64,000 nt of DNA from Pecten maximus (lineage: Eukaryota): positions 12,462,001-12,526,000 of the forward strand of contig NC_047028.1 in the NCBI RefSeq assembly GCF_902652985.1, in the 5' to 3' direction. Made by a program: the position numbers and the translations under genes. The notes under the pieces were generated by a model that saw nothing but the letters and a program-made list of their open reading frames with translations, ran no database searches and had not been told where the DNA came from. Positions 21,231 to 47,369 of this stretch are shown here, piece after piece (position 1 is the stretch's first letter; every line of letters begins with the position of its first letter).

Positions 21231-21408
21231 AAATATAATTTTTGGCAATATATTCACACCTTGGGTTAAATATGGTATATGTGAGTCATAAAATGATGGG
21301 AAATGATTTTGACAAAATCAATCAAATGAAAGTAAATGAGTTATATACATCCTTTCTAAATTTGCTGGTATTTCATTTTTTCAGGAATTGCTGTCCTTTA
21401 ATCTTACC

Positions 21409-22596
21409 ATGGCTTTCCATCAGTCACCCAGAAGCGCCACAGTCTTCAGAGATGATAAACTGCATACAGATTTCCAGACGTCCAATGCGGAGTTTACCTT
21501 GGAGATTTATAAGCGTTTGACTAAAATGTCCACAGACGGAAATTTGTTCTACTCGCCTTTCTCAATCTCCGCCGCCATGTCCATGGTTTATCTTGGTGCC
21601 AGGGAGCAGACGGCAGACCAGATGATTCCCGCGCTTAGTATTCAATCCTTAGGTCAGCGAGTGCATGATGCTTATGAGGATTACTTGAAGGTGGTTTTAG
21701 GTAAAAGCGATAATGTCACACTTCATATTGCCAACAGACTATATCCTAACAGTAAGACGGACATTGTACCATCTTTCATTGAGCTATGTGCTAAGCACTA
21801 CCAAGCTGACACCAAAACAATGGACTATCGACAATTTGAAGCTGCAAGAAAAGAAATTAACGAATGGGTAAGCCAGCAGACAGCAGAGAAAATAAAAGAC
21901 CTTCTTCCTGAGGGATCTCTAAATCCATTAACAATGATGGTATTGGTAAATGCCATCTACTTCAAAGGTGACTGGGAGACACCATTTGACGACAAAGTTA
22001 CTAAAGATATGACTTTCCATAACCTTAACGGTCAACAAAAGACTGTGAAAATGATGATTGAGAAAGCTACAAAATTTCCGTTCAAACAAGATGATGAATT
22101 AAAATGTAAGGTTTTGGAATTGCCCTATAGAGGAAATGACCTCTCAATGGTCATTATTTTGCCAAATGATATAGACGGATTACCTGCCCTTGAAGAGAAA
22201 TTAACCCCTTCCGTAATTAAAGGACTTACGACAAAAATGCCACCTATAAAAGTGGAAGTGTTTCTACCAAAATTTAAACTTAAATCGAGATTTGAGCTTT
22301 CAAAATTGTTCCAGAGCATGGGAATGACAGATCTGTTTGATGGATCCAAAGCCGACCTGACTGGCACAGACGCTTCCAAGATGTCGTATGTGTCCGCCAT
22401 CTTTCACCAAGCTTTTGTAGACGTAAACGAGAAAGGCACCGAAGCAGCTGCAGCAACAGCCGTTGTAATGATGTTTGGAATGGCTCGTCCAACAACGCCA
22501 ATACAGTTCAAGGCCGATCACCCATTCATGTTTGTCATCAAAGACAATCGATCCGACACAATTTTGTTTGTTGGAAGGTATGTCGATGTCGTTTAA
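21409..22596 (+). CDS. Serpin copy 1 (395 aa), predicted intracellular; RCL P2-P1-P1' = Phe-Gly-Met
   Basis: Serpin motifs NLFYSPFSIS, NAIYFKGDW, LPKFKL, hinge EKGTEAAAAT and FKADHPFMF. Acceptor TTTTTTCAG ends at 21384 and the first ATG (ACCATGG) is at 21409. No signal peptide and no KDEL. Confidence 0.95.
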   Translation: MAFHQSPRSATVFRDDKLHTDFQTSNAEFTLEIYKRLTKMSTDGNLFYSPFSISAAMSMVYLGAREQTADQMIPALSIQSLGQRVHDAYEDYLKVVLGKSDNVTLHIANRLYPNSKTDIVPSFIELCAKHYQADTKTMDYRQFEAARKEINEWVSQQTAEKIKDLLPEGSLNPLTMMVLVNAIYFKGDWETPFDDKVTKDMTFHNLNGQQKTVKMMIEKATKFPFKQDDELKCKVLELPYRGNDLSMVIILPNDIDGLPALEEKLTPSVIKGLTTKMPPIKVEVFLPKFKLKSRFELSKLFQSMGMTDLFDGSKADLTGTDASKMSYVSAIFHQAFVDVNEKGTEAAAATAVVMMFGMARPTTPIQFKADHPFMFVIKDNRSDTILFVGRYVDVV

Positions 22597-23859
22597 ACGC
22601 CAGAAAGGGACGAATCACGAAGATAAATATAGAGGACCTTGTATTACCTATCACACACCAGACTTTATGTACTGATATACGTTTAGTGCAATGGAACTTT
22701 CCTGGCAGCTACAGTTGGTTCTGATGTTTTCACTGTATAGTCTTATAAACTATTGTCCACGTCCACTCGTGGTGTAAAATTCGGATACCAAAGTATGTTC
22801 AAATTAACTTTACACTCATTTATTTCTTGTATGTATTTTCTTATAACTTTTTGCCATCTGTTCAAGAAGGATTCTTTTCTGGTGATGTATCTTATTGTCT
22901 TTTTTTTATGTTTAATTGGTAATTGAAGGCGATGTATACCCCGGTATGTGTATACCTGGTCTGCATTGTTAAGGAGTCTAGACAAAAGTAGAAACTAATT
23001 TTATAATTAATTTATCAGCGTGTTCTGATCACAGTGAGCGATGTTGAGGTTTGAATTTCTTGATTCTTGTAATGCTATTTAAAGACTGCAATTTCCGAAC
23101 ACATCATAAGACTTCTTACATATTTCTAAAAAGGTGAGAAAAACATCGTATCTGCTTATTACTTCCCATGTCATAAGTTTTGATGTTCGATGTTCAGAAT
23201 TTATTAAAGTAATAGAACGCATGATAAACGACAGGCTGTGCGCACGATTACATCTGTTTAAAAAAATCCTCTGTCATAAACACAGCCACGCGCGCGTATG
23301 CATATTTTCGGTGTGGGGGGGGGGGGGGGGGTGCAAAAAGTAGGTACGTTGTAAGATGTGTAATACTTTTTCATTTGAAGGAAAATATTAACTCCGATTA
23401 TTTCTTCGAACGTATCAATTTTGTTAACTAGAAAAGATATCAAAATGTATACATACATGATATATATCCATGCTTTGCCTAATTTTGTCATTTTGTTAAA
23501 AATAAATTGCAAATTAACAAATTAACTCATTGGCAAACCAATAATACAGCACCTGGCGATTTTTACTTGTTCATGTCATAGACGTAAGACGTCCGGTCAA
23601 AAAGTGGAAGCAGAAAGCGATATTTAATTGATCAATGCAAATAACGTTATTGTAAGGAAGAGCAATACTTCTGTATGCTGTGTAATAATTGACTGTTGGT
23701 TGTTCAATTCTGTCGGAAATGAAAATAATAAAAATTCAAAATGTCAACATTGACAGCGGTCATCATTTATAAATTATTTTTCTTGTTATCTATATACAAT
23801 GTAATTATATCGGCAATGAATAAGCTTCGCAATCATTGATTGCACATGATAATTATATT

Positions 23860-26296: not shown

Positions 26297-26699
26297 ACTA
26301 ATATATCTACATTAGTTTTGTAAGGTGGTTGTACTGATATTCTTGATACAATGTCCGGCTTATCTGTGTAGGTAAAGAACTGATATCAATAGATGATAGC
26401 GTTTGTGATAGTTGTAATCGATTTATATAAGCAGTTCTTCATACAGGAAAATTTAACAAGAGCCGGTCCCGAAGAGGACGAGAGTTACTAGGTTTACACA
26501 TTTTACCTTTCAAGTAAATGGAATTTATCAGTTAATTAACTTGTTTAGCGCATACATGACGGATTCTACTGCTATGTTTCAGCAAAACGATTATATCGGT
26601 GTTAGTTACAAAGTAGTCATAGTGGCGTATCGCCCGCATGAATCCGGAATGGAAGGGTGGGTAAATACGGGATTTTACAGTAAGGGGAACGCAAGTGAT

Positions 26700-27570
26700 T
26701 TATCAGAGAGGGGAATGAAAGGGATGGGAATCATGAGATTTGACAGGGAGGGAATCTAAGGGGTGGGAATCATGAGATTTGACAGGGAGGGGAATGTAGG
26801 GGGTGGGAATCATGAGATTTGACAGGGAGGGGAATGTAAGGGGTAGGAAATCATGAGATTTGACAGGGAGGAGAATGTAAGGGGTGGGAATCATGAGATT
26901 TGACAGGTAGGAGAATGTAAGAGAAGTGGTAGAAATCATGAGATTTGACAGGTAGGTGAATCCAAGGGGTGGGAATCATGAGATTTGACAGGGAGGAGAA
27001 TGCAAGGGGTGGGAATCATGAGATTTGACAGGGAGGTGAATGTAAGGGGTCGGAATCATGAGATTTGACAGGGAGGAGAATGTAAGGGGTGGGAATCATG
27101 AGATTTGACAGGGAGGAGAATGTAAGGGGTGGAATCATGAGATTTGACATGAAGGAGAGTGCATGGGGTCGGAATCATGAGATTTGACAGGGAGGGGAAT
27201 GTAAGGGAAGGGGTCGAAATCATGATATTTGACAGGGAGGGGAATGTAAGGGTAGGGAATTATGAGATTTGACATGGAGGTGAATTCAAGGGATGGGAAT
27301 CATGACATTTGACAGGAAGGAGAGTGCATGGGGTCGGAATGATGGTATTTGACAGGGAGGGGAATGCAAGGGGGCGGAATCATGGGATTTGACAGGTAGG
27401 TGAATTCAAGGGATGGGAATCATGAGATTTGACAGGAAGGAGAGTGCATGGGGTGGGAATCATGATATTTGACAGGGAGGGGAATGCAAGGGGTCGGAAT
27501 CATGAGATTTGACATGGAGGGGAATTGAAGAGGAGTTGGGGAAACATGAGATTTGACGGGGAGGGGAATG
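26700..27570. repeat. G-rich 40-bp minisatellite in intron 1 of serpin copy 2
   Basis: Unit GGGTGGGAATCATGAGATTTGACAGGGAGGGGAATGTAAG, ~21 copies. Confidence 0.93.
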
Positions 27571-28541
27571 TAAAGTGTGGGAAATACGGAAGTAACAAGG
27601 AGGGTAGTTATATAGCATAGAGGAGGATCAAGGGCTTTTACAAGATATGGAACGCAAGTGTAGGGAAATATTGGATTTAACACTGAGGAGAATTTCAATG
27701 TGTGAAAAGGGGATTAAGGAGGGAGAGGAATCACGTGATTAAACAGAGAGAATTGTGAGGGATGGAAATTACTTGATTTAACAGGAAGATGAATGCAAGG
27801 GATAGGTATTTTACAAGGAAGTATTTCCAGACTCGAGCACCACTTAACTATTTTATGGCCCTCATTTTACTCCTTGACAATCTAATCTTATCTAAGAGAC
27901 AAAGTAGTAGTAATAAAACCTGTTTAAAGACACTGTTTTGCGGCCGTTAAAAAGATTGACTAATAAATAATTACCGAATATTTTATTTGTACATTTAAAG
28001 GTATTGCTTCAAACAAAAGTTATTGTTGACCTATGATTAATATAATATCATTTAGGAACTTTTTAACATTTAACATACAGAAAAACAGCGAGAGGAATAT
28101 ATATTTAAGAAAAATGCTAAAAAAAAAGATTGATACATTATTAGTCGCATTTATATCCGCTTTCAAATTCTATCTTCATTGCTGTCATACACTCTATCCT
28201 ACACAATGCTTGTCATCCTATGACATATTCTATATTGTTACGATACCCACTGTATATTCCTTTCCTACGGTACAATGTATATTCCAACGATACAGTGTAT
28301 ATTCCTATCATACTGATGCATTGTATAGTATCCTTCATTGTTTATACATAGCATAAACTGTACGTTATATTATTGTCAATTCTTATATATATCCTACATT
28401 GTAGATAACTTTCCAACATAACATATGCCTATCCTACATCGTACATTGTATATACATATAGCATTGTATATTCCTATTTACATCCTCCATTGTACATACC
28501 TATCCTACATTGTATATTCCTGTTTTGATTTCTTTAGGGAT

Positions 28542-29783
28542 ATGAAACACCAATGGTTGTCCCTAGTCCTTATCATGGCTTTCCTTCAGTCACCCAGCAG
28601 CGCCAAAGTTTTCAGGGATGATAAACTGCATACAGATTTCCAAACGTCCAATGCGGACTTCACCTTGGAGATTTATAAGCGTTTGACTAAAATGTCCACA
28701 GACGGAAATTTGTTCTTCTCGCCTTTCTCAATCTCCGCCGCCATGTCCATGGTTTATCTTGGTGCCAGGGAGCAGACGGCAGACCAGATGATTCCCGCGC
28801 TTCGTATTCAATCCTTAGGTCAGCGAGTGCACGATGCTTATGAGGATTACTTGAAGGTGGTTTTAGATAAAAACGATAACGTCACACTTCAGATTGCCAA
28901 CAGACTGTATCCTGACAGTAAGACGGACATTGTACCATCTTTCATTGAGCTATGTGCTAAGCACTACCAAGCTGACACCAAAACAATGGACTATGGACAA
29001 TTTGAAACTGCAAGAAAAGAAATTAACGAATGGGTAAGCCAACAGACAGCAGAGAAAATAAAAGACCTTCTTCCTGAGGGATCTCTCAATTCATTAACAA
29101 TGATGGTATTGGTAAACGCTATCTACTTCAAAGGTGACTGGGAAACAAAATTTGATGAAAAAGCTACCAGGGATATGACCTTTCATAACCTCAAAGGTCA
29201 ACAAAAGACTGTGAAAATGATGTTTCAGAAAGCTACACAATTTCCGCTTAAATACGATGGTGAATTAAAATGTAAGGTTTTGGAATTGCCTTACAAAGGA
29301 AACAGCCTCTCAATGGTCATTATTTTGCCTGAGGATAGAGACGGATTGCCTGCTCTTGAAGAGAAATTAAGCTCGTCCGTAATTAAAGGACTTACGACAG
29401 AAATGTCACCTATAGAAGTGGAAGTGTTTCTCCCAAAATTTAAACTTAAATCGGGATTTGAGCTTTCAAAAATGTTCAAAAGCATGGGAATGACAGATCT
29501 GTTTGATGGATACAAAGCCGACTTGACTGGCATAGACGCCGCCAAGATGTCGCATGTGTCCGCCATCTTTCACCAAGCTTTTGTGGACGTAAACGAGGAA
29601 GGCACCGAAGCAGCTGCAGCCACAGCCGTTACAATGGAGACATTTTCATCTCCAGGTCCACCATTACAATTCAAGGCCGATCACCCATTCATGTTCGTTA
29701 TCAAAGACAATCGGTCCGACACAATTTTGTTTGTTGGAAGATTTGCTGATGTTGTTCAGGCACAAGAAAAAGATGAATTATAG
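28542..29783 (+). CDS. Serpin copy 2 (413 aa), signal peptide + KDEL; RCL P1-P1' = Phe-Ser
   Basis: Acceptor TTTAG ends at 28537. N-terminus MKHQWLSLVLIMAFLQSPSSA. Hinge and loop EEGTEAAAATAVTMETF|SSPGPP. Ends QEKDEL*. Confidence 0.96.
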   Translation: MKHQWLSLVLIMAFLQSPSSAKVFRDDKLHTDFQTSNADFTLEIYKRLTKMSTDGNLFFSPFSISAAMSMVYLGAREQTADQMIPALRIQSLGQRVHDAYEDYLKVVLDKNDNVTLQIANRLYPDSKTDIVPSFIELCAKHYQADTKTMDYGQFETARKEINEWVSQQTAEKIKDLLPEGSLNSLTMMVLVNAIYFKGDWETKFDEKATRDMTFHNLKGQQKTVKMMFQKATQFPLKYDGELKCKVLELPYKGNSLSMVIILPEDRDGLPALEEKLSSSVIKGLTTEMSPIEVEVFLPKFKLKSGFELSKMFKSMGMTDLFDGYKADLTGIDAAKMSHVSAIFHQAFVDVNEEGTEAAAATAVTMETFSSPGPPLQFKADHPFMFVIKDNRSDTILFVGRFADVVQAQEKDEL

Positions 29784-31257
29784 AAAACCCATTTGTTCAA
29801 TTTCATTGATACAGATAATGTGGTGCTGACGTACTTGCCTTCTGGTTATCACAACTGAACCCTGTCCTAGTTTGTTGGTGTATATGAGACTGAAATCATC
29901 ACCGTATACTATACTGTTACTATTGCTGTCATTCTTATATCCTATATACTGAGTATATAGTATAATCTTCATACTGATAACATTGCATTGATCATCTTTG
30001 TTGATATGGATATCTAGATTTCCTTCCCTGTCCCTTACTTTTTGGATCTCTTGATTGGTTATCGACATATTTACATTCCGTGAGCTTGTTTTCGCTACCA
30101 TATGATGTTTAGACTGTGATTGCCATTGCCGAAGATGAGCTAGTGGAAAGAAACAACTAGGTAACGATTTGTTATTTGACAACGTGTTTTGCAATTCTTC
30201 CTGAAGAACTTAATTTCGAATTGAGATGCTTGATGACAATGATTTTTTTATTATCTTTTATATAAATATTGATACACATTTTTAAAATGATCAGTCATAT
30301 ATATTTATTTGCATTATCTTTTTTTTCAATTCGGGAAACTGTTTTATCGGTGAACCAAATATTTTGTTTTTGGAACGGACGTGTGCTGGCACAATGTCTT
30401 TTATTGTTATACGGAATACAAATGTAAAAATCAGTGTTTGGAAAATGTGTACTATTTCAGGAATCGTTACTCGCACACACGTGACTCCTGTCTATTTTAT
30501 CCATGTAGTATTATTACAAAAATCAACCGAGATTAATTTTTATCTAAGACTCGTAAACATATATCTATAGAATAGTTTTACGGTATACGCTTGGGTATCG
30601 CTATTTTAAAATTCCATTTCATTATATATAAGAGAAAACCATCGTTTAATAAATATTAAATACAGTTTTAATCGCTTTAAGGAAATTTAAAAAAGCATAT
30701 GGACGTTAAAGCTCGTCATATCTATAGACATCAAAAACGATAACACGAGTGGAAACTGAACTAAAGGAAGTGATGTATATGTACAGTCGTGTAAGTCGAA
30801 CTTCATATCGCATTGTGGTGACGATCTTCAATCTCGGGTAGATGTTATCTTGGTTTTAAAGGTATTCATCACCAGCAATATTTAAAAAGTGATCCTCGCA
30901 GCCTTTCATGATCAGCTTGTATTTATTTTGAGGTAGACAATGGTGTGCTTTAGTCACATGTATCGCTTTGTTTCATTTATATTGTATTCCTTTTGTTGCG
31001 TTTAAGAGTAATTTTAATTGTTAGTTATGAACAACAGTGGTATTATTGACTAGTTTTAACAATATCTAAAGGTTGAACATGATTTAATTGATGATCAATG
31101 TTTAAGCTGTTGAATGTAATTTGATTTACCAATATTTTATTTTAGTTAAATAAAATATATATTTTACGAATTTATTTAACTGTATGATTACTTAAAGCTA
31201 ACGTGAAATATAGTGTTAACCCTAAGTGATATTATGCGGATTGAAATGAAATAAAAT

Positions 31258-31727
31258 AACTAGAACTGTCTCAAGGATGGCTGACTAATACTCCCGAAAT
31301 CTACAATGGTGAAATGGAACTGTTAATTAGAGGCTTACTAAGATAACCCAGTAATATAGTGACCAGTTGCTATAGCAACCATAATTAAAAAAAAAAAAAA
31401 ATAAGTGGCATGCACATCAACACATATTCGTGTAAAGTTTCATTGAAATCGGCCCATCGGTTTCGGAGGAGTTGTCCGGACCAACTTAAAGTTATGGTTC
31501 TTATCAGAAAACCTGTGTATAGTTACCAGTTGCCATAGCAACCATAATTTTGTGAAAAATAAAGTGGCATGCACATCTACACACGGTCCTCTATATTTGT
31601 GTGAAGTTTCATTGAAACCGGCCAATCGGTTTAGGAGGAGTTGTCCGGACAAAATGCGTCTACAGACAGACGGACGGACGGACAACCTGATTCCAGTATA
31701 CCCCCTAACTTCGTTGCGGGGGTATAA
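31258..31727 (-). mobile_element. Non-autonomous Helentron-associated element (HINE-like), present only in duplication unit A
   Basis: The - strand begins TTATACCCCCGCAACGAAGTTAGGGGGTATA (hairpin), followed by a (GTCC/GTCT)n microsatellite and two ~163-bp core repeats. Absent from the paralogous site at ~39040. Confidence 0.8.
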
Positions 31728-32582
31728 TAAAATAATTTTTATTACATCCGTTTCGTAGATAGCGAATTGTGGCATTACTGTGGGCATACATGGGAAAATA
31801 ACAAAATTATTATATCAAACAATATTCATTTCAATTAATTGTCATACAGGAATATATAAGGATACTTAGTTATACATGTATATACTAATCATACACACTA
31901 ATGCTTGTTTTACAGAAATATATGAGTCATTGTCAGAAATCTTTAAATATTGCAAGAAATGTTTTTTATTCTATTTAACCAAACTTTAGGGTAAAATGTC
32001 CATTATGGCATCAATTTCAAAATAAAGTTTTCACAAACAAGAAACAGGAATTTGAAATTAAACTTAGAATCATTATAAAAGCGTCAACTTCCCAAGTTGT
32101 ACATGTTGATATTATTTGCTCATGTGTCCTAAGAGATGATCTATGATGATATCTCAGAGGCTCTTTAAGTAACACAATGGTGGGGGACTGTTTTGAAGAG
32201 AACATTTTAACTTTTAAATCAATAAGGTTGATGATGAATCAAGTTTTAATTGCTTTGTTGTTTAAAGTTAAAATCTTGTGAGCACAAAGAAAAAAAAAAA
32301 AAAAAAATCATCAAAGAAAAAAAACAAGTTTTGGATCCTGACCGAAAAATGTCTATAGCTTATTTCAAAATCACGGTTTAAAATGAACAACATTTTACCA
32401 ACATTGATTGTTTTTTACTGGTCAGAAAAGCATGACTTCTTTCCCCTGTCTTTCTTCTTTCTCATATATATATATATATATATATGGGCAATACATTTAT
32501 CCTTCATGGCCTATAATGCCTTTGCCTTCATTAAGCACATTAACAAAATTTACTTATGGTTCAGTTTAAAAATCTGGTAATT

Positions 32583-32800
32583 CCTCGCCTCAATAACCTC
32601 CGATTTTACCTCACCTCAATAACCTCCGATTTTACCTCGCCTAAATAACCTCCGATTTTACCTCGCCTCAATAACCTCCGATTTTACCTCGCCTTAATAA
32701 CCTCCGATTTTACCTCGCCTCAATAACCTCCGATTTTACCTCGCCTCAATAACCTCCGATTTTACCTCGCCTCAATAACCTCCGATTTTACCTCGCCTAA
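32583..32800. repeat. 26-bp minisatellite, ~8 copies
   Basis: Unit CCTCGCCTCAATAACCTCCGATTTTA. Confidence 0.93.
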
Positions 32801-33299
32801 ATAGCCATTGCTCTTGTTTGTCTTTTCCACACTCTCCTTCTGATTTTTTTGCACTCTCTCTTTCACTTCTCACCTCAACCTCCTCGTGATTATTCCTCCT
32901 TCCAACACTCTGCTCCAGCTTGTCCGTTGTAACAACCCACTCCTGTTTCTCCATTAGCTGCGATAACATAGCTCTGGACGACGGACGGACAATATCTGAC
33001 AGATGGTCGTCGTTAGAAGAGCAGGTTAGGCAGGGTATTAATATTCGTTCTATTTCTCCATCACCTCAACAGTCTCATCGTGTTCTTTCTGGTCTCGTCA
33101 CCATCAATATGATTCTCTTTCATTTCACACTCTCCTTCTGATCCCCATTACACTGTTAGAAAGTAAATGGAAGGTGGTATAGATCAGGAATGGTTAATAT
33201 AACTAGGAAGGCAGGGATGGGGTTAAGCAGTGTTTAAATGGTACAAAATGAACGTATTTGAATTACGAGATTTAATAGGAAGAGGAATGACTGAAAAAG

Positions 33300-33945: not shown

Positions 33946-34394
33946 ATACAACATTGGAATCGATTATAAAGCGCTTTTTAACCCGTTTCTGGTTGTTATA
34001 ACACTATATTTTATAACAACAAGAAACGGGTGTTTTTTTTAAAGCACTTTATAATCGATTCCAATGTTGTATCGGTGCATAAATAGACAAGAAATGATGT
34101 TACAAATTAAAATTAGACAATTCCATTATAACTTTAGTTCCTGATCCCAAGTACCTGTGAATGAAAGTGCATTAAAGTCTGAGGCGGTACAAAACTAGAT
34201 CGCCAATGTTAACAGTGAATGTATTCAAACGCAGGCAAGAAAGTGATTCGTCTCTCAGAACAGAAGCACGCGACCCAAAATCTTAACATTCAACGGGAAA
34301 TTCAGATCGAAGTGAAAAAGTAAATATATCGTTGTAATTGTCAGAGAGAATAATCCATCAATAAGAATAATAAATGCCATGTTTCGTAAACTTT

Positions 34395-34551
34395 CGTTCC
34401 GTTTGTTTGAGACGATTTATTCCGATAATTTGCGTGCGTATATGTAAACAAACGTGTCCACACCTTCACTAGGCCGTATCGCGGAAGTTTGCTGTGCATA
34501 GTTTCTTATCTACATAGCGCACGTATACATGTTTATTAACACAGGTAAGTA
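34395..34551 (+). promoter_or_regulatory. Putative promoter / non-coding exon 1 of serpin copy 3
   Basis: TTCCGATAA, TGTAAACA (34443-34450), CGCGGAAGT (34480-34488) and donor CAG|GTAAGT (GT at 34545). Confidence 0.6.
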
Positions 34552-36189
34552 ACTGATATATCTACATTCTTTTCGTAAGGTGGTTGTTCTGATATTCTGG
34601 ATATAACCCCCAATTTATATATGTAGATCATGATCGAGTAGTTCTTTAATATCGATAAAAATGATAACTGATCATCATGATAACATTGATCTATAATCGA
34701 TAAATTTAACAAGAGTCGGTCCCGAAGGGGGCGAGAGTTACCATGCTTACACATTGTACATATGAAGTTAATGACTTTTGTCCGTTAATTAACTGGTGTG
34801 TCGTATACAAGAAGTACCCTACTGTTAGGTTTCGCCAAAACGAGTATAGTATATATATACAAATGTAGTTATAATTGTTTAGTATCGCATCTCGTCTGCT
34901 GAAAGACCCGTTCAATAAATAAATAGTGTCACATGACTCGGGATTGGAAGGGTAGGAATTACGGGATTTAACAGGGAATGTCGTGATAAATATACCTTAA
35001 GCCAAGTTGACGTGATAAGATTGGTCATAAAACCTGCTAAACTGACACAGTTTTATGGCCATAACAACAGGTAGGCCTACAAATAATTACCGAATATTTC
35101 ATTTCCACAGTTACATATATCAGGGATCAGAATCATGATATTTAACAGGGAGGGAAATTGAAGAGGAGTTGGGGAACATGAGTTTGACGGGGAGGGGAAC
35201 GTAAAGTGTGGGAAAGACGGACGTAACAAGGAGGGTAGTGATATAGCATAGAGGAGGATCAATGGCTTTTACAAGATATGGAAAGCAATCGTAGGGAAAT
35301 ATTGGATTTAACATTGAGGAGAATTCCAATGTGTGAAAAGGGGATTAAGGAGGGAGAGGGATCACGTGATTAAACAAAGAGAAAATTCCGTGGGAGGGGA
35401 TTACTTGTTTTAACAGGAAGATGGACGCAAGAGATCTAGATGGATTACTGGTTATAACAAGAAGAGGGATGTAAGGGATGGGAGTTACGGTATTTTACAA
35501 GGAAGTTTTTCCAGACTCAAGCTCAACTTAACTATTTTAAGGGACTCATTTTACGCCTTGACAATCAAATCTTTATTTTTAAGAATTTAAGAGACATAGT
35601 AGTAGTCGTAAAACATGTTTATAGAAACTGTTTTGTGGCAGTTAAAATGATTGGCTAACAACTAATTACTGAATATTTTATTTGTACATTTACAGGTATT
35701 ATTTCAAAGATAAGTTGATGTTAACCTATAATTAATATAAAGATATGATGTAGAAACTTTTGAACATTTCACATACAGAAAAACAGGATCTGCTAAAAGA
35801 GATTTATTCATCATTCTCCGAATTTATATCTGCTTTCAAATTATACATTTATTGCTTTCATACGCCTTATCCTACATAATATTTGCCTGTTATATATTGT
35901 TACGATACTCATTGTATATTCCAACGATACATTGTATATTCCTGTCATTCTGATACATTGTATAGTATCCTTCATTGTTTATACATATCCTAAATTGTAC
36001 ATTTTATTATTGTAAATTCTTATATATATCCTACATTGTAGATAACTTTCCAACATTGCATACGCATATCCTACATCGTACATTGCATATACATATATAA
36101 CATTGTATATTCCTATTCCACATTATTTATGCTCACTTCACATTGTATATGCCCATCCTCATTCCTGTTGTTTTGATTTCTTTAGGGAT

Positions 36190-37431
36190 ATGAAACACCA
36201 ATGGCTGTCCCTAGTCATTATTATGGCTTTCCTTCAATCACCAAGCAGAGCTAAAGTTTTCAGAGATGATAAACTGCATACAGATTTCCAGACGTCCAAT
36301 GCGGACTTCACCTTGGAGATGTATAAGCGTTTGACTAAAATGTCCACAGACGGGAATTTGTTCTACTCGCCTTTCTCCATCTCTGCCGCCATGTCCATGG
36401 TTTATCTTGGTGCCAGGGAGCAGACGGCAGCCCAGATGATTCCCGCTCTTAGTATTCAATCCTTAGGTCAGCGAGTGCACGATGGTTATGAGGATTACTT
36501 GAAGGTGGTTTTAGGTAAAAGCGATAACGTCACACTTCAGATTGCCAACAGACTGTATCCTGACAGCAAGACGGACGTTGTACCATCTTTCATTGAGCTA
36601 TGTGCTAAGTACTACCAAGCCGACACCAAAACAATAGACTATCGACAATTTGAAGCTGCAAGAAAAGAAATCAACGAATGGGTGAGTCATCAGACAGCAG
36701 AGAAAATAAAAGACCTTCTTCCTGAGGGATCTTTAACTCCATTAACAGTGATGGTATTGGTAAACGCTATCTACTTCAAAGGTGACTGGGAGACAAAATT
36801 TGATGACAAAGTCACCAAGGATATGACCTTTCATAACCTCAAAGGTCAACAAAAGACTGTGAAAATGATGTTTCAGAAAGCTACAAAATTTCCGCTTAAA
36901 TACGATGATCAATTAAGATGTACGGTTTTGGAATTGCCTTACAAAGCGAACAGCCTCTCAATGGTCATTATTTTGCCAGATGATATAGACGGATTACCTG
37001 CCCTTGAAGAGAAATTAACCCCTTCTGTAATTAAAGGACTTACGACAAAAATGCCACCTGTAAACGTGGAAGTGTTTCTTCCAAAATTCAAACTTAAATC
37101 GAGTTTTGAGCTTTCAAAATTGTTCCAGAGCATGGGAATGACATATCTGTTTCATGGATCCAAAGCCGACCTGACTGGCATAGACACTTCCAATACGTCA
37201 TATGTGTCCTTCATCTTTCACCAAGCTTTTGTAGACGTAAACGAGGAAGGCACCGAAGCAGCTGCAGCCACAGCCGTTATAATTGTGGCATGTTCATCGC
37301 GAGGGCTACCATTACAATTCAAGGCCGATCACCCATTCATGTTCGTTATCAAAGACAATCGGTCCGACACAATTTTGTTTGTTGGAAGATTTGCTGATGT
37401 TGTTCAGGCACAAGAAAAAGATGAATTATAG
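36190..37431 (+). CDS. Serpin copy 3 (413 aa), signal peptide + KDEL; RCL P1-P1' = Cys-Ser
   Basis: Acceptor TTTAG ends at 36185. N-terminus MKHQWLSLVIIMAFLQSPSRA. Hinge and loop EEGTEAAAATAVIIVAC|SSRGLP. Ends QEKDEL*. Confidence 0.96.
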   Translation: MKHQWLSLVIIMAFLQSPSRAKVFRDDKLHTDFQTSNADFTLEMYKRLTKMSTDGNLFYSPFSISAAMSMVYLGAREQTAAQMIPALSIQSLGQRVHDGYEDYLKVVLGKSDNVTLQIANRLYPDSKTDVVPSFIELCAKYYQADTKTIDYRQFEAARKEINEWVSHQTAEKIKDLLPEGSLTPLTVMVLVNAIYFKGDWETKFDDKVTKDMTFHNLKGQQKTVKMMFQKATKFPLKYDDQLRCTVLELPYKANSLSMVIILPDDIDGLPALEEKLTPSVIKGLTTKMPPVNVEVFLPKFKLKSSFELSKLFQSMGMTYLFHGSKADLTGIDTSNTSYVSFIFHQAFVDVNEEGTEAAAATAVIIVACSSRGLPLQFKADHPFMFVIKDNRSDTILFVGRFADVVQAQEKDEL

Positions 37432-40400
37432 AAAACCCATTTGTTCAATTTCATTGATACAGATAATGTGGTGCTGACGTACTTGCCTTCTGGTTATCAC
37501 AACTGAACCCTGTCCTAGTTTGTTGGTGTATATGAGACTGAAATCATCACCGTATAATATACTGTTACTATTGCTGTCATTCTTATATCCTATATACTGA
37601 GTATATAGTATAATCTTCATACTGATAACATTGCATTGATCATCTTTGTTGATATGGATATCTAGATTTCCTTCCCTGTCCCTTACTTTTTGGATCTCTT
37701 GATTGGTTATCGACATATTTACATTCCGTGAGCTTGTTTTCGCTACCATATGATGTTTAGACTGTGATTGCCATTGCCGAAGATGAGCTAGTGGAAAGAA
37801 ACAACTAGGTAACGATTTGTTATTTGACAACGTGTTCTGTCATCCTTCCTGACGAATGTAACTTCGAATTGAGATGCCTGATGACAATGATTTTTTATTA
37901 TCTTTTATATAAATATTAATACACATTTTTAAAATGATCAGTCATATATATTTAATATCATTATCTTTTTTTCAATTCGGGAAACTGTTTTAATCGGTGA
38001 ATTAAAGATTTTGTTTTTGGAACGGACGTGTGCTGGAACAATGTCTTTTATTGTTAAAGGGAATACAAATGTAAAAATCAGTGTTTGGAAAATGTGTCAT
38101 ATTTTCAGGAATCGTCACTCGCACACACGTGACTCCTTTCTATTTTATCCATGTAGCAAAAATCAACCGAGATTAATTTTTATTTAAAACTCGTATACAT
38201 ATATCTATAGAATATTTTTACGGTATACGCTCGGGTATCGCTATTTCAAAATTCCATTTTCATTATTTATAAGAGGAAATCATCGTTTAATAAATATTAA
38301 ATACAGTTTTAGTCGCTTTAAGGAAATTTAAAAAGCATATGGACGTCATATCTATAGACATCAAAAACGATAACACGAGTGGAAACTGAACTAAAAGGAA
38401 GTGATGTATATATACAGTCGTGTAAGTCCAACTTCATATCGCATTGTGGTGACGATCTTAAATCTCAGGTAGATGTTATCTTGGTTTTAAAGGTATCCAT
38501 CACCAAACAATATTTAAAAAGTGATCCTCGCAGCCTTTCATGATCAGCTTGTATCTATTTTGAGGTAGACAACGGTGTGCTTTTGTTACACGTATCGCTT
38601 TGTTTCATTTATATTGTATTCCTTTTGTTGCGATTAAGAGTGATTTTAATTGTTAGTTATTAATTACAGTGGTATTATTGACTAGTTTTACCAATATTTA
38701 AAGGTTGAACATGATTTAATTGATGACCAATGTTTAAGCTGTTGAATGTAATTTGATTTACCAATATTTTATTTTAGTTAAATAAAATATATATTTTACG
38801 AATTTGGTTAACTGTATGATTACTTAAAGCCATAATATGACCGCTTATCCTAAACAATTCATTTGGACGGCATACCAAAATATCAAATGTGTAAATCATA
38901 TTGTGAAACTGTTTATATGATGACAACTTTTCAGAGTGAATATGAAAAATTTGCAAATTGACTATAGGGAAGTTACACTGAAACGTGAAATATAGTGTTA
39001 ACCTAAAGTGATATTATGCGGATTGAAATGAAATAAAATAAACAGAAGCAATACAATCATTTTTATTACATCAGTTTCTTAGATAGCGAATAGGCATTAG
39101 TGTGGGCATACATGGAAAAATAACAAAATTATTATATCAAACAATATTCATTTCAATTATTTGTCATACAGGAATATATAAGGATACTTAGTTATACATG
39201 TATATACTAATCATACACACTAATGCTTGTTTTACAGAAATATATGAGTCATGGTCAGAAATCTTAAATATAAGAATTTTTTTAATCTATTGAACCAAAC
39301 TTTAGGGTAAAATGTCCATTATGGCATCAATTTCAAAATAAAGTTTTCACAAACAAGAAACAGGAATTTGAAATTAAATTTAGAATCGTTACAAAAGCGT
39401 AAACTTCCAAAGTTGTACATGTTGATATTATTTGCTCATATGTCCTAAGAGACAAAATGATGATTTATCAGAGGCTGTTTAAGTCACACAATGGTGGGGG
39501 ACTGTTTTGAAGAGAACATTTTAACTAAAATCAATGAGGTTGGATGATGAAACAAGTTTTAATTGCTTTGTTGTTTAAAATTAAAATCCTGTGAGCAAAA
39601 AGAACAAAAAAATGTCAGAAAGGAAAAAACAAGTATTGGATCCTGACCAAAAAAATGTCTATAGCTTACTTTAAAATCACGGTTTACAATGAACAACATT
39701 GTACCAACATTGATTTGTTTTACTGGCAGCACTTCTTTCCCCTGTCTTTCTTCTCTCATATATATATGGACAATACATATATCCTTCCTGGTCAATAATG
39801 CCTTTACCTTAATAAAGCACAAAATTGCGAATTACATATGTACTTATGGTTCAGTTTAAAAATCTGGTCATCCCTCGCCTCAATAACCTCACCTAAACAG
39901 CCATTGCTCTTTTTTGTCTTTTCCACACTCTCCTTTTGATTCTTTCGCACGTCTTCGCTCTCTCTTTCACTTCTCATATCAGCCTCCTCCTGATTATTCC
40001 TCCTTCCAACACTCTGCTCCAGCTTGTCCGTCGTAACAACCCACTCCTCCTGTTTCTCCATTAGCTGCGATAACGTAGCTCTGGACGACGGACGGACAAT
40101 TTCTGACAGATGGTCGTCGTTAGAAGAGCATTGTAGGTAGGGTATGAATATTCGTTCTATTTCTCCATCATCTCAACAGTCTCATCGTGTTCTTTCTTGT
40201 CTCGTCACCATCAATATAATTCTCTTCCATTTCACACTCTTCTTCTGATCTCCCATTACACCAATACTATCATTTTATTTTCCCACTTATGTTACACTAA
40301 GAATATAACACGACACAGTGCCGTTGTAATAGATAGTACTAAGACATTGCTTTGTTCCGAATATGAAATATTCACAGAACATATACAGTTTGAACTGGAA

Positions 40401-41399: not shown

Positions 41400-43358
41400 A
41401 TGGGAATTACGGGATATAACAGGGAGTGTGATGGAAGGATGACATTACGGAATATAACAGGGAGGGTAATGGAAGGGATGATATTACAGAATATAACAGG
41501 GAGGGTAATGGAAAGGTGGAAATTGCGGGATATAACAGGGAGGATAATGGAAGGCTGGAGATTACGGGATATAACAGGGAGGGTAATGGAAGGGTGGATA
41601 TTACGGAATATAACAGGGAGGGTAATGGAAGGGTGGAGATTACGGGATATAACAGGGAGGATAATGGAATGATGGAGATCACGGGATATAACAGAGAGGG
41701 TAATGGAAGGCTGGAGTTACGGGATATAACAGGGAGGGTAACGGAAGGGTGGATATTACGGGATATAGCAGGGAGGGTAATGAAAGAGTGGAGATTACAG
41801 GATATAACATGGATGATAATGGAAGGGTGGAGATTACAGGATATAACATGGAGGATAATGGAAGGGTGGAGATTACAGGATATAACATGGAGGATAATGG
41901 AAGGGTGGAGATTACAGGATATAACATGGAGGATAATGGAAGGGTGGAGATTACGGGATATAATAGGGAGGGTAATGGAAGGGTGGATATTTCGGGATAT
42001 AACAGGGAGGCTAATGGAAGAGTGGAGATTACGGGATATAACATGGATGATAATGGAAGGGTGGAGATTACGGAATATAACAGGAAGGGTAATGGAAGGG
42101 TGGAGATTACGGGATATAACAGGGAGGATAATGGAAGGGTGGAGATTACGGGATATAACGGGGGGGGGGGGGGGGGGGGTAACGGAAGGGTGGGGATTAC
42201 GGGATATAACAGGGAGGGTAATGGAAGGGTGGAGATTACGGGATATAACAGGGAGGGTAATGGAAGGGTGGAGATTACGGGATATAACAGGGAGGGTAAT
42301 GGAAGGGTGGAGATTACGGGATATAACAGGGAGGGTAATGGAAGAGTGGAGATTACGGGATATAACAGGGAGGGTAATGGAAGGGTGGAGATTACGGGAT
42401 ATAACAGGGAGGGTAATGGAAGGGTGGAGATTACGGGATATAATAGGGAGGGTAATGAAAGGGTGGAGATTACGGGATATAATAGGGAGGGTAATGGAAG
42501 GGTGGATATTTCGGGATATAACAGGGAGGCTAATGGAAGAGTGGAGATTACGGGATATAACATGGATGATAATGGAAGGGTGGAGATTACGGAATATAAC
42601 AGGAAGGGTAATGGAAGGGTGGAGATTACGGGATATAACAGGGAGGATAATGGAAGGGTGGAGATTACGGGATATAACGGGGGGGGGGGGGGGGGGGGGG
42701 GGGTAACGGAAGGGTGGGGATTACGGGATATAACAGGGAGGGTAATGGAAGAGTGGAGATTACGGGATATAACAGGGAGGGTAATGGAAGGGTGGAGATT
42801 ACGGGATATAATAGGGAGGGTAATGAAAGGGTGGAGATTACGGGATATAATAGGGAGGGTAATGGAAGGGTGGATATTTCGGGATATAACAGGGAGGCTA
42901 ATGGAAGAGTGGAGATTACGGGATATAACATGGATGATAATGGAAGGGTGGAGATTACGGAATATAACAGGAAGGGTAATGGAAGGGTGGAGATTACGGG
43001 ATATAACAGGGAGGATAATGGAAGGGTGGAGATTACGGGATATAACGGGGGGGGGGGGGGGGGGGGGGGTAACGGAAGGGTGGGGATTACGGGATATAAC
43101 AGGGAGGGTAATGGAAGGGTGGAGATTACGGGATATAACAGGGAGGGTAATGGAAGGGTGGAGATTACGGGATATAACAGGGAGGGTAATGGAAGGGTGG
43201 AGATTACGGGATATAACAGGGAGGGTAATGGAAGAGTGGAGATTACGGGATATAACAGGGAGGGTAATGGAAGGGTGGAGATTACGGGATATAACAGGGA
43301 GGGTAATGGAAGGGTGGAGATTACGGGATATAACAGGGAGGGTAATGGAAGGGTGGAG
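41400..43358. repeat. G-rich 39-bp minisatellite (unit B copy), ~50 copies with poly-G tracts
   Basis: Same unit as 33300-33945. Poly-G runs at ~42159-42179, ~42679-42703 and ~43046-43069. Confidence 0.95.
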
Positions 43359-43561
43359 AACAGCTAGGCCTACTGCGCTACGTACATGTAGGTCATGAGC
43401 TCGGTGCTATCGGGAGTGTCAGTGTTTTGTCAGATCCTGTTTTCTAAACTGTCTGCATTATACTGGCATCCTCCTTATCAGCACATAAAACGGCTCTTCT
43501 ACTTGTGTTTAAATACTTTATAACAATGTTACACAACTCACAAAACGAAAGCACAAGTATA

Positions 43562-43722
43562 TTCTTGTCTATTTATGCACCGATACAACATTGGAATCGA
43601 TTATAAAGCGCTTTTTAACCCGTTTCTGGTTGTTATAACTCTCTATTTTATAACAACCAGTTTTTTTTAAACGCGCTTTATAATCGATTCCAATGTTGTA
43701 TCGGTGCATAAATAGACAAGAA
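43562..43722. mobile_element. Palindromic MITE-like element (truncated paralogous copy at ~33945-34093)
   Basis: TTCTTGTCTATTTATGCACCGATACAACATTGGAATCGATTATAAAGCGC ... GCGCTTTATAATCGATTCCAATGTTGTATCGGTGCATAAATAGACAAGAA. Confidence 0.75.
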
Positions 43723-44039
43723 ATGATGTTACAAATTAAAATTAGACAATTCCATTATATCTTTAGTTCCTGATCCCAAGTACCTGTGAATGAAAGTGCA
43801 TTAAAGTCTGAGGCGGTACAAAACTAGATCGCCAATGTAAACAGTGAATGTATTCAAACGCAGGCAAGAAAGTGATTCGTCTCTCAGAACAGAAGCACGC
43901 GACCCAAAATCTTAACATTCAACGGGAAATGAAGTAATCTGAGTTTACTAGTTTCAGAGCGAAGTGAAAAAGTAAATATATCGTATTAAATGTCAGAAAG
44001 AATAATCCATCAATAAGAATAATAAATGCCATGTTTCGT

Positions 44040-44189
44040 GCCGTTTGTTTGAAACGATTTATTCCGATAATTTGTGTGTGTGTATGTAAACAAACGTGTC
44101 CACACCTTCACTAGGCCGTATCGCGGAAGTTCGCTGTGCATAGTTTCTTATCTTCATCACGTATACATGTTTATTAACACAGGTAAGTA
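44040..44189 (+). promoter_or_regulatory. Putative promoter / non-coding exon 1 of serpin copy 4
   Basis: TTCCGATAA, TGTAAACA (44085-44092), CGCGGAAGT (44122-44130) and donor CAG|GTAAGT (GT at 44183). Confidence 0.6.
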
Positions 44190-44919
44190 ACTGATATATC
44201 TACATTATTTTCGTAAGGTGGTTGTTCTGATATTCTGGATATAACCCCCAATTTATATATGTAGGTAATGATCGAGTAGTTCTTATCGATAAAAATGATA
44301 ACTGATAACACTGATCTATAATCTATAAATTTAACAAGAGTTGGTCCCGAAGGGGGCGAGAGTTACCATGCTTACACATTGTACATATGAAGTTAATGAC
44401 TTTTGTCCGTTAATTAACTGGTGTGTCGTATACAAGAAGTACCCTACTGCTAGGTTTCGCCAAAACGAGTATAGTATATATATAGTTATAATTGTTTAGT
44501 ATCGCATCTCGTCTGCTGAAAGACCCGTTAAATAAATAAATAGTGTCACATGACTCGGGATTGGAAGGTAGGAATTACGGGATTTAACAGGGAATGTCGT
44601 GATAAATATACCTTAAGCCAAGTTGACGTGATAAGATTGGTCATAAAACCTGCTAAACTGACACAGTTTTATGGCCATAACAACAGGTAGGCCTACAAAT
44701 AATTACCGAATATTTCATTTCCACAGTTACAGATATAACTATTACAAGCCACTTATAAGTTGATGTTAACCTATCAATATAACAATATGATGTAGTGAAT
44801 TTGGACTTTTATATTGTAAACAATTACAAAATAACAAGAGTGATATATATTAAACTACACGTTAGACAATGTGTGAGTATGAGTATGTTAATAGTGATTT
44901 AATACACTATTTCTATCTG

Positions 44920-46110
44920 CTTACCTATCCTACATTGTATATATTCTATCCTACATGGCATATATTTACATATATATATATATATACTTTATTGTATAAT
45001 TCATAGCATACATGAAATATTGTGTATATTCTATCCTATATTATATATATATATATATCCTACACTATATGTATGTTACCCTTCATTGAATATATTCTAT
45101 CCTATATTGTATTACTAGTATTCATATCCTGCATTGTATGTACATTCTATTGTATGTATTCTAATCTACTTTGTATATATTCTATCTTACATTTTATACA
45201 TCTATCCTGTATTGGGTATATATATATGTACGCTTATGTTTAACGGTATATTTATATGAATATTAATATTTTATTGCTTTATATTATCCCGTGATAAAAT
45301 AATAATCCAGTATTTAGATTTAAGTAACCTTAGCCAAAGGTTTACTCTCTTATACAATCTCAAGGAGTTACTTCCCCTTAAGTCAATTTGTCATATCAAT
45401 GTGTACATATACATTGTATTTGTCTGTATATAAGGAGAAGACTAAGGTAGGCTATTCCTGATATCTAATGCTATTGACTTTCTTTCTATGTCAATAAAAT
45501 TTGTCAAAATTGAAATTGAATATATCTTTTATTATACATTTAAAAAAAATCCTTTCCTATATCTATCCTACATTGTATATATTCTATCTTACATTGTATA
45601 TATGTCTATTACCTGCATTGTTGCATCCTAAGTTATATATATGCCTGTTTTACATTGTATATATTTTATCCTACTTTGTATAATTCCTATCCTACATTAT
45701 ATATGTGATCATACTTTGTATATCTTCTTATTCTACATTGTATATATCTATCCTTCATTTTATAAATTCTATCCTAATTGTTTATATTCTATCCTACAGT
45801 TTATATATCTATCCTGCATTGTATAAATCCTAAATTATATATGCCTGTTTTACATTGTACATGTATATATTTTCTCCTACTTTGTATAATTCCCATCCTA
45901 CATTGTTATACCCATCTTTAATTTATATTTCTTATCCTACATTATATATATTCTGTCCAAAATTGTTTATATCTATCCTGCATTGTATATATCCTTAATT
46001 ATATATACGTTTTACATTGTACACTGATATTATATTTTATATATTCATATCTTCCATTGCATATTCTATTCATACATTGTGTATTGTTGTCCCATATTAT
46101 ATATTCCTAT
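44920..46110. repeat. Degenerate ATCCTACATTGTATAT low-complexity repeat in serpin intron 1 (shorter versions before copies 2 and 3)
   Basis: Recurring TATCCTACATTGTATAT-like units up to the splice acceptor. Confidence 0.65.
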
Positions 46111-46127
46111 TCTACTTTTTCAGGTGT

Positions 46128-47369
46128 ATGAAACAACAACGGCTGTCCCTAATCCTTACCATGGCTTTCCTTCAGTCACTTAGCAGCGCTAAAGTCTTCA
46201 GAGATGATGGACTGCATACAGATTTCCAGACGTCCAACGCGGACTTTACCTTGGAGATTTATAAGCGTTTGACTAAAATGTCCACAGACGGGAATTTGTT
46301 CTACTCGCCTTTCTCCATCTCTGCCGCTATGTCCATGGTTTATCTTGGTGCCAGGGAGCAGACGGCAGCCCAGATGATTCCCGCGCTTAGAATTCAATCC
46401 TTAGGTCAGCGGGTGCACGATGGTTATGAGGATTACTTGAAGGTGGTTTTAGGTAAAAGCGATAACGTCACACTTCAGATTGCCAACAGACTGTATCCTG
46501 ACAGTAAGACGGACATTGTACCATCTTTCATTGAGCTATGTGCTAAGCACTACCAAGCCGACACCAAAACAATGGACTATGGACAATTTGAAACTGCAAG
46601 AAAAGAAATCAACGAATGGGTGAGTCATCAGACAGCAGAGAAAATAAAAGACCTTCTTCCTGAGGGATCTTTAAATCCATTAACAATGATGGTATTGGTA
46701 AACGCTATCTACTTCAAAGGTGACTGGGAGACAAAATTTGATGACAAAGTTACCAGGGATATGACCTTTCATAACCTCAAAGGTCAACAAAAGACTGTGA
46801 AAATGATGTTTCAGAAAGCTACAAAATTTCCGCTTAAATACGATGATGAATTCAAATGTAAGGTTTTGGAATTGCCTTACAAAGGGAACAGCCTCTCAAT
46901 GGTCATTATTTTGCCAGATGATACAGACGGATTGCCTGCTCTTGAAGAGAAATTAACCCCGTCCGTACTTAAAGGACTTACGACAGAAATGCCACCTGTA
47001 AAAGTGGAAGTGTTTCTCCCAAAATTTAAACTTAAATCGGGGTTTGAGCTTTCAAAAATGTTCCAAAGTATGGGAATGACAGATCTGTTTGATAAATCCA
47101 AAGCCGACCTGACTGGCATAGACGCCTCCAAGATGTCATATGTGTCCGCCATATTTCACCAAGCTTTTGTGGACGTGAACGAAGAAGGCACTGAAGCAGC
47201 AGCAGCCACAGCCGTTGTAATGATGAAAAGATCATTGCCAAGACCACCATTACAGTTCAAGGCCGACCACCCATTCATGTTTGTCATCAAAGACAATCGG
47301 TCCAACACAATTTTGTTTGTTGGAAGATTTGCTGATGTTGTTGAGGCACAAGGAAAAGATGAATTATAG
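46128..47369 (+). CDS. Serpin copy 4 (413 aa), signal peptide + KDEL; dibasic RCL MMKR|S, candidate proprotein-convertase inhibitor
   Basis: Acceptor TTTTTCAG ends at 46123. N-terminus MKQQRLSLILTMAFLQSLSSA. Hinge and loop EEGTEAAAATAVVMMKR|SLPRPP. Ends QGKDEL*. Confidence 0.96.
   Translation: MKQQRLSLILTMAFLQSLSSAKVFRDDGLHTDFQTSNADFTLEIYKRLTKMSTDGNLFYSPFSISAAMSMVYLGAREQTAAQMIPALRIQSLGQRVHDGYEDYLKVVLGKSDNVTLQIANRLYPDSKTDIVPSFIELCAKHYQADTKTMDYGQFETARKEINEWVSHQTAEKIKDLLPEGSLNPLTMMVLVNAIYFKGDWETKFDDKVTRDMTFHNLKGQQKTVKMMFQKATKFPLKYDDEFKCKVLELPYKGNSLSMVIILPDDTDGLPALEEKLTPSVLKGLTTEMPPVKVEVFLPKFKLKSGFELSKMFQSMGMTDLFDKSKADLTGIDASKMSYVSAIFHQAFVDVNEEGTEAAAATAVVMMKRSLPRPPLQFKADHPFMFVIKDNRSNTILFVGRFADVVEAQGKDEL

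Follow-up and report, generated by a model that had tools for sequence, protein, structure and literature searches.

How one serpin scaffold can come to carry several reactive loops and reach more than one cellular address is the question raised by a four-gene array in the scallop Pecten maximus. The window studied here, meaning the whole stretch of 64,000 nucleotides that was analysed, is C14:12462001-12526000 of the chromosome scaffold. Its list of open reading frames (ORFs) includes four complete serpin ORFs in tandem, all on the + strand and numbered here copies 1 to 4. Copy 1 occupies 21409..22596 (395 amino acids), and copies 2, 3 and 4 (413 amino acids each) lie at 28542..29783, 36190..37431 and 46128..47369, respectively. 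The coding sequence (CDS) is uninterrupted by introns in every copy. Copy 1 lacks both a signal peptide and the C-terminal KDEL, and copy 4 is the conserved, ancestral-type member. The explanation that we favour, and consider probable, is that of a lineage-specific tandem array derived from a conserved secretory-pathway serpin with a Lys-Arg (K-R) reactive centre and a KDEL tail. The loops of copies 2 and 3 would have been rewritten and copy 1 relocalised, with the genes exchanging sequence.

All four ORFs matched the Pfam Serpin profile (PF00079) over its full length (E ~1e-122, 408-413 bits, profile positions 2-369 of 370), and their best sequence matches in the PDB were SERPINB1, conserpin and PAI-2. 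An earlier sequence-only reading of this DNA had reported four serpin ORFs, and the coordinates and full-length Pfam matches confirm them. That reading had also called the scaffolds near-identical; identity is indeed high, but the term slightly overstates it, as the proteins differ by 10-13%. Copy 1 shares 87-89% of its residues with copies 2-4, and copy 4 shares 87-90% with the other three; at the DNA level, identity among the four is 91-93%.

We next considered the hinge and the reactive centre loop (RCL). Inhibitory serpins were recognised by Glu at P17, Gly at P15, Thr at P14, small residues at P12-P9 and 17 residues from P17 to P1, and all four copies display this hinge consensus and this spacing. 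The hinge E-[EK]-G-T-E-A-A-A-A-T is intact in each of them, with Lys at P16 in copy 1, a residue that occurs there in 2% of homologs. Counting 17 residues from P17 Glu, and writing the P1-P1' bond as a slash, P2-P1/P1' is F-G/M in copy 1 (RCL from P17 to P6', 22429..22497, + strand, one residue longer than the loops of the other copies), T-F/S in copy 2 (29595-29663; P1 codon 29643-29645), A-C/S in copy 3 (37243-37311; P1 codon 37291-37293) and K-R/S within M-M-K-R/S-L in copy 4 (47181-47249; P1 codon 47229-47231), the last three likewise on the + strand. This recount gave the same four assignments as the sequence-only reading. Only copy 4 presents the dibasic P2-P1 that serves as convertase bait; copies 1-3 have F-G, T-F and A-C in its place. 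Judged by their loops, copies 1-3 would be relatives of the convertase-inhibitor class and not convertase-type members of it.

The second variable is the address. Copies 2-4 begin with M-K-x-Q, followed by an 11-residue hydrophobic core and then S-x-A ahead of the mature end. Signal peptides were judged by a heuristic that combined a basic n-region, a nine-residue Kyte-Doolittle mean and S-x-A at -3/-1. The best nine-residue mean was 2.3-2.9 in copies 2-4 and 0.10 in copy 1, and the signal peptides predicted in this way span 28542-28604, 36190-36252 and 46128-46190 (+ strand) in copies 2, 3 and 4. The same three copies end in KDEL (29769-29780, 37417-37428 and 47355-47366, + strand) and match the C-terminal retrieval motif of the endoplasmic reticulum (ER), the PROSITE pattern [KRHQSA]-[DENQ]-E-L, as quoted in PMC4476131; copy 1 does not match it. 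A signal peptide and KDEL on copies 2-4 and neither on copy 1 is what had been read from the letters before, and this assignment stands, with the signal peptides called by the heuristic. Each of copies 2-4 also has an acceptor-like polypyrimidine tract with AG ending 4 nucleotides (nt) 5' of the ATG (28520..28537, 36168-36185 and 46106-46123, + strand), which suggests a non-coding 5' exon.

Two observations concern initiation in these copies. The context of the first copy 4 ATG is weak (T at -3, A at +4; 46125-46131), and that of the conserved Met12 codon is strong (A at -3, G at +4) in all copies (46161-46164 in copy 4; 28575-28578 in copy 2, with the first ATG at 28539-28545). Leaky scanning to Met12 might yield a signal-peptide-less isoform from the KDEL copies, which we offer as speculation.

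To which class does the array belong? The loop and tail of copy 4, V-M-M-K-R/S-L-P ... KDEL, are common to the K-R copies of Mizuhopecten and Argopecten, and the K-R/KDEL serpins of unionids, oysters, clams and hemichordates have them too. Branchiostoma Spn-1, with N-M-M-K-R/S-L ... KDEL, matches copy 4 in both loop and tail, and overall identity between copy 4 and B. lanceolatum Spn-1 is 45%. The K-R copies have the shortest terminal branches in both trees, and the private changes of copy 4 number 10 synonymous to 9 nonsynonymous (ratio of nonsynonymous to synonymous rates, omega, ~0.24). On these grounds copy 4 matches the conserved ER-resident convertase-inhibitor class and would represent its ancestral type. 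Branchiostoma Spn-1 has been described as a convertase-inhibiting 'secretory pathway serpin' (Kumar and Ragg 2008, PMC2556349), and the deuterostome neuroserpin/Spn-1 lineage is defined by head-to-head microsynteny with PDCD10 (PMC2556349). PDCD10 microsynteny is absent at the scallop array: PDCD10 (PF06840) lies at C14:24319634-24323098 (24.32 Mb) and the array at 12.48-12.51 Mb, 11.8 Mb apart. The earlier proposal of tandem duplication with variation of both loop and address is supported, with an ER-addressed K-R/KDEL serpin as the starting point: copy 4 has the MMKR/SL loop and the KDEL in common with lancelet Spn-1.

The history of the duplications can be followed in the flanks. Copies 2, 3 and 4 share flanking DNA and a G-rich minisatellite of 39-40 bp upstream of each gene, located at 26697..27583 (+ strand) for copy 2, with related arrays at 33303-33911 for copy 3 and 41406-43359 for copy 4. 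The 3' flank of copy 2 (29784..31198, + strand) is shared with that of copy 3 (37432-38830), with 3.9% divergence over 1.4 kb. A far-upstream block of copy 3 (34032..35120, + strand) is shared instead with copy 4 (43660-44736; 2.3% divergence), and from 35122 on the copy 3 unit switches to match the copy 2 unit. The CDS is a mosaic as well. Its 38 parsimony-informative sites sort into three blocks whose groupings contradict one another; the blocks unite copies 1+2 vs 3+4 at nt 130-510, copies 1+3 vs 2+4 at nt 773-1010 and copies 1+4 vs 2+3 at nt 1056-1124; such clustering was reached in only 230 of 100,000 shuffles. Synonymous divergence of the CDS (0.13-0.25) is greater than the divergence of the youngest flanks (2-4%). 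Taken together, the mosaic blocks and this excess show that gene conversion or unequal crossing-over still goes on between all four genes. In trees the paralogs cluster by species, which fits independent duplication and concerted evolution alike. As part of the duplicated unit, the minisatellite is a likely substrate for unequal crossing-over. Its family has a unit of 38-40 bp, and the arrays that precede copies 2-4 comprise 16 to 49 units; a related array in inverted orientation, with at least 120 units, occupies 59557-64000 and reaches the end of the window.

We then used the 3' flank shared by copies 2 and 3 (3.9%) as the neutral yardstick for that duplication. Across P5-P5', these copies differ at 9 of 30 bases, with seven nonsynonymous and two synonymous differences and one change per codon, whereas the 123 coding bases right after the loop show no difference at all. 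The loop excess over the adjoining 1.4 kb of flank is about eight-fold (binomial P=1.4e-6). Against copy 4, 12 of the 30 loop bases differ (P ~1e-5). Nonsynonymous change per site in the loop (0.30-0.64) exceeds synonymous change per site in the scaffold (0.12-0.21) in five of six pairs, and the ratio of nonsynonymous to synonymous rates (dN/dS) in the scaffold is 0.20-0.41 in all pairs. A comparison of dN/dS between RCL and scaffold had been proposed with the sequence-only reading, and its outcome is the classical signature of a hypervariable reactive centre: the loop evolves faster than the neutral flank, and the scaffold is conserved. The divergence of the copy 2 and copy 3 loops points to diversifying selection.

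Several observations weigh against this interpretation. The loop window is small (10-14 codons), and part of the loop excess could come from escape from homogenisation, or from micro-conversion by a lost donor, and not from positive selection. Gene conversion also blurs the counts of private changes and any tree-based dating. Private scaffold changes in copies 2 and 3 (6 synonymous to 18 nonsynonymous and 6 to 19, respectively; omega ~0.8) are indistinguishable from neutrality, and constraint on these two copies is significantly weaker than on copies 1 and 4 (Fisher p=0.010). Copy 3 replaces residues in two columns that are 88-92% conserved (G253A and D319Y). The protease targets that we assign below are derived from P1 identity only. 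Expression data are ambiguous in a similar way. In a coarse, word-level comparison with RNA sequencing (RNA-Seq) runs, those of one study contain 0.22-0.29 of the words sampled from 28400-37600, of which two CDSs make up 0.27, and runs of seven studies contain parts of this stretch; a share of 0.29 is also explicable by one transcript with a long 3' untranslated region (UTR).

The neutral-like scaffold of copies 2 and 3, so different from copies 1 and 4, and the replacements at highly conserved columns of copy 3 would be expected if both copies were redundant young duplicates drifting to pseudogenes, their loop changes amounting to loss of K-R, with copy 4 the only one that matters. About 27 random substitutions would, moreover, leave an ORF open 31% of the time by chance. 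We nevertheless consider this account unlikely. Drift is not so local as to concentrate changes about eight-fold in a loop that is followed by identical sequence. Copies 2-4 show no indels among 85-92 substitutions in their CDSs, against 0.06-0.33 indel events per substitution in their flanks, and the hinge, predicted signal peptide and KDEL are intact in both copy 2 and copy 3. The RNA-Seq words exceed what one CDS accounts for, and other bivalves keep similar paralogs with an xDEL-type C terminus and Phe, Val or Met at P1. We regard copies 2 and 3 as young genes, probably functional, that evolve under relaxed or adaptive conditions.

Copy 1 differs from the others at both ends. Its start Met aligns with residue 12 of the other copies and has a strong context, ACCATGG. 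Directly upstream, 21385..21408 (+ strand) reads in frame as ELLSFNLT, a relic of the signal peptide with no ATG, and this is preceded by an acceptor-like polypyrimidine-CAG at 21368-21384 (+ strand), 24 nt 5' of the ATG. At the 3' end, a TAA stands at the Gln codon of the other copies, eight codons ahead of the KDEL position, and is followed by TPERDESR, compared with AQEKDEL-stop elsewhere (22594..22620, + strand). Mutation has removed the start codon and the KDEL tail of copy 1, and relics of both remain readable. Homology to the other copies is limited to ~21365-22620, with no common flanks, and a comparison of the copy 1 upstream sequence with the regions upstream of copies 2-4 gave no match. 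Private scaffold changes in copy 1 number 20 synonymous to 22 nonsynonymous, with omega ~0.29 (P=1e-4 against neutrality). Copy 1 is still under purifying selection, and its scaffold, like that of copy 4, is constrained. From its genomic ORF, copy 1 is most likely a secondarily intracellular serpin. A processed retrocopy was considered as its origin and rejected, because the intronic, acceptor-like polypyrimidine-AG tract is kept and there is neither a poly(A) tract nor 3' UTR homology.

Copy 1 is not alone in this double loss: Mizuhopecten P0008 and Sinanodonta P0023 have neither signal peptide nor KDEL and start at the equivalent position. As for orthology between copy 1 and P0008, trees place copy 1 within the Pecten clade, and the copies are conversion mosaics, which blurs the trees; the double loss in copy 1 and P0008 is either parallel or old and masked.

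The acceptor-like CAG lies in frame with the copy 1 ATG with no intervening stop, and homology to the other copies ends at the borders of the CDS. Both observations would also fit a copy 1 that is no cytosolic inhibitor, being either a non-functional relic or a gene spliced to an upstream coding exon and secreted without KDEL. There is an engineered precedent for the second possibility, as Spn4A of Drosophila with a stop before its retention signal is a secreted serpin (PMC3252376). We judge this alternative quite improbable. The 42 private changes reject neutrality, the public gene model of copy 1 (P0003, 395 aa) begins at this same Met, and the Met is in the ACCATGG context. The h-region of the relic is broken by Ser, Asn and Thr, and the two other bivalve proteins with the double loss start at the equivalent position. 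Our preferred reading of copy 1 therefore remains that of a secondarily intracellular serpin.

An inverted repeat lies at 20630-21185, with arms of ~230 nt that are 89-93% complementary in three collinear pieces, and ends ~200 nt before the acceptor-like site of copy 1. Such a structure may be a foldback insertion or one resembling a miniature inverted-repeat transposable element (MITE), possibly relevant to the copy 1 promoter.

The array itself appears to be complete as described. A six-frame search of the genome (918,306,378 bp, 3,983 scaffolds) returned only these four copies and one serpin of 36% identity on another chromosome, and tblastn across the window gave four full-length matches and no further serpin fragments, loop fragments or RCL cassette exons. 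Public annotation already holds these genes under the label 'leukocyte elastase inhibitor-like', as it does their closest named homologs, Mizuhopecten and Argopecten proteins of 82-83% identity. Bivalve genomes are highly heterozygous (1.71% in P. maximus; PMC7191990), and an assembly artefact of collapsed or duplicated haplotypes, which the sequence-only reading had itself named as a way to be wrong, can be set aside as extremely improbable, because CDS divergence among the copies is 7-9%, far above this heterozygosity, and flanks, minisatellite lengths and reactive loops differ from copy to copy; in addition, the published assembly is long-read, Hi-C scaffolded and curated (PMC7191990, where serpins are not mentioned), and adjacent paralogs are also present in Argopecten, Mizuhopecten and unionid genomes.

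From these results we infer the following course of events, with its localisations, its gene models 5' of the ATG, its protease targets and its physiological roles. The ancestor would have been a serpin of the Bl-Spn1/Spn4A class of proprotein-convertase inhibitors, whose dibasic K-R centre went with a signal peptide and a C-terminal KDEL. Copy 4 keeps this design; its most likely targets are furin-type convertases, which it would inhibit in the ER or cis-Golgi by the serpin suicide mechanism, with the KDEL receptor retrieving it. Copies 2 and 3 would have kept the signal peptide, hinge and KDEL while a burst of single-base substitutions, most of them nonsynonymous, remodelled their P5-P5' bait; with Phe and Cys at P1, they would offer baits of chymotrypsin-like and elastase-like type in that compartment. 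Copy 1 would have lost its initiator region and gained a stop before KDEL, and translation from the internal Met would give a nucleocytoplasmic serpin with Phe at P2. The four genes presumably keep exchanging sequence through gene conversion or unequal crossing-over, and their reactive loops stay different. A KDEL-receptor gene is present in the genome, as are at least five convertase P-domain loci, and the proposed mechanism is therefore feasible.

Putative targets were inferred from P1: Phe would suit chymotrypsin-type proteases and Cys elastase-type proteases, and Phe at P2 in copy 1 would suit papain-like cathepsins. A protease-surveillance or anti-pathogen role, suggested in the sequence-only reading, would likewise be conjectured from P1. 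In SERPINB1 the Phe and Cys reactive sites are neighbours, and SERPINB3 inhibits papain-like cathepsins through a Phe-Gly loop. Site-1 protease (SKI-1/S1P) was also considered as a target of the two copies with a hydrophobic P1, and was rejected, as both lack the P4 Arg/Lys of the engineered RRLL Spn4A. Two features are peculiar to copy 3. It has gained an N-T-S glycosylation sequon at residue 335 (37192-37200), and its P1 is an unpaired Cys (37291-37293), which is odd in the oxidising ER lumen and might influence how the protein is retained or how active it is.

How often does a serpin with an ER-retention signal carry a non-basic P1? We surveyed homologs comprising the 120 closest database proteins and 142 further cluster representatives. 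An xDEL-type C terminus was present in 37 of these, the majority with K-R or R-R, several monobasic and eight non-basic. The non-basic P2-P1 pairs are A-C (copy 3), I-V (Mizuhopecten), L-F (Sinanodonta) and T-F (Mya, ending in HEEL), together with V-M, L-S, P-S and D-F. At least five of the eight have a hydrophobic N terminus, which is absent in Mya and one further model. In the tree, at least five bivalve lineages have non-basic xDEL proteins as sisters of K-R copies; several of these are adjacent genes by locus tag or scaffold. Our literature search on scallop, oyster or molluscan KDEL serpins found nothing relevant. The statement in the sequence-only reading that KDEL serpins with a non-basic P1 are unusual holds for the literature, but not for the sequence data, where 8 of 37 xDEL homologs are of this kind; Ciona serpins with ER-retention signals and differing loops have also been published. 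The combination is little described, and the scallop array is not its only case.

A wider generalisation is tempting, and we put it forward only tentatively, as doubtful yet conceivable. Bivalves (scallops, unionids, oysters and others) may have repeatedly and independently turned the K-R/KDEL inhibitor into ER-lumen repertoires whose P1 is Phe, Cys, Val or Met, in arrays that tend to shed one cytosolic copy by double loss. If this were true, the early secretory pathway of bivalves would hold an unrecognised chymotrypsin- or elastase-like activity that needs policing. It could come from digestive or immune zymogens that are activated too early, or from the proteases of parasites living inside the cells.

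The remaining features of the window appear to have little to do with serpins. Upstream of the array, a long ORF at 7132-8950 (- strand) has a weak Pfam match to DUF7637 (4.9e-10, on repeated short stretches), and another at 14317-15162 (- strand) has one to DUF1647 (5.8e-7); these are probably exons or intronless genes unrelated to the array. The ORF translations at 31440-31787 (- strand) and 47458-47730 (+ strand), 3' of copies 2 and 4, have the motifs RPSVC... and RTTPPK/RTTPSK in common, and a 152-bp tandem repeat follows copy 4 at 47693-48190. Together these look like a dispersed repeat element.

The array matters in three respects. ER-retained inhibitory serpins are known almost only as basic-loop convertase inhibitors, and here aromatic and cysteine P1 residues are put on the same scaffold and address. 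The probable natural relocalisation of copy 1, through a lost start and a stop before KDEL, mirrors what was engineered in Spn4A, where a stop placed before HDEL frees the protein from the ER and loop swaps retarget it (PMC3252376). Four closely matched natural proteins also make a test set for the effects of loop and address on serpin function. The recurrent bivalve pattern was not found in the literature searched.

Among known systems, lancelet Spn-1 (Bl-Spn1/Bfl-Spn-1) is like scallop copy 4 in its signal peptide, its P4-P2' sequence M-M-K-R/S-L and its KDEL. The scallop copies also resemble sea urchin and Nematostella secretory-pathway members in having few or no introns in the serpin core (PMC2556349). 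Unlike lancelet Spn-1, the scallop genes form a four-gene array with K-R in one member only, and they have no PDCD10 head-to-head neighbour.

Drosophila Spn42Da (Spn4) reaches much the same outcome by another route. It combines alternative RCL exons with the presence or absence of a signal peptide and has HDEL on the furin inhibitor Spn4A (PMC4006314, PMC3252376), just as the sequence-only reading had described it. In both systems a single scaffold bears several loops and has a signal peptide in some versions only, and one ER-retained version has a basic loop. Where the single fly gene chooses between mutually exclusive RCL exons and between alternative 5' exons, the scallop has separate complete genes; each ORF is complete with one loop, and no RCL cassettes stand behind a common core. 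In the scallop, moreover, the retention signal stays on non-basic loops as well. The Ciona group U6 serpins (Ci-Spn-9, Ci-Spn-10A/B and Cs-Spn-2) are likewise clustered, with ER-retention signals and differing loops (PMC4150122). That work is a descriptive catalogue without evidence of loop acceleration, gene conversion or address loss, and it concerns another phylum and HDEL/HDEF, as opposed to the KDEL of the scallop.

Of the solved structures, those of the intracellular clade B serpins SERPINB1 and SERPINB3 match best by sequence (4ga7 at 1.9e-89, and 2zv6). Copy 1 resembles these serpins in lacking a signal peptide, although it would be intracellular only secondarily, whereas copies 2-4 differ from them in their cleavable-looking signal peptides and KDEL.

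The mode of evolution has its closest parallel in vertebrates. Rodent Serpina1 and Serpina3 reportedly form tandem arrays with hypervariable reactive centres, as Hill and Hastie are said to have noted in 1987, and a woodrat SERPINA3 study is said to concern another tandem vertebrate serpin cluster. The scallop genes resemble the rodent arrays in their tandem duplication and conserved scaffold, in reactive centres that change faster than the neutral rate, and in the exchange of sequence between paralogs. Unlike the rodent proteins, which are secreted into plasma, the diversifying scallop copies bear an ER-retrieval signal. Tandem duplication with a hypervariable reactive centre is classical for serpins, and the scallop array extends a known class by a known mode.

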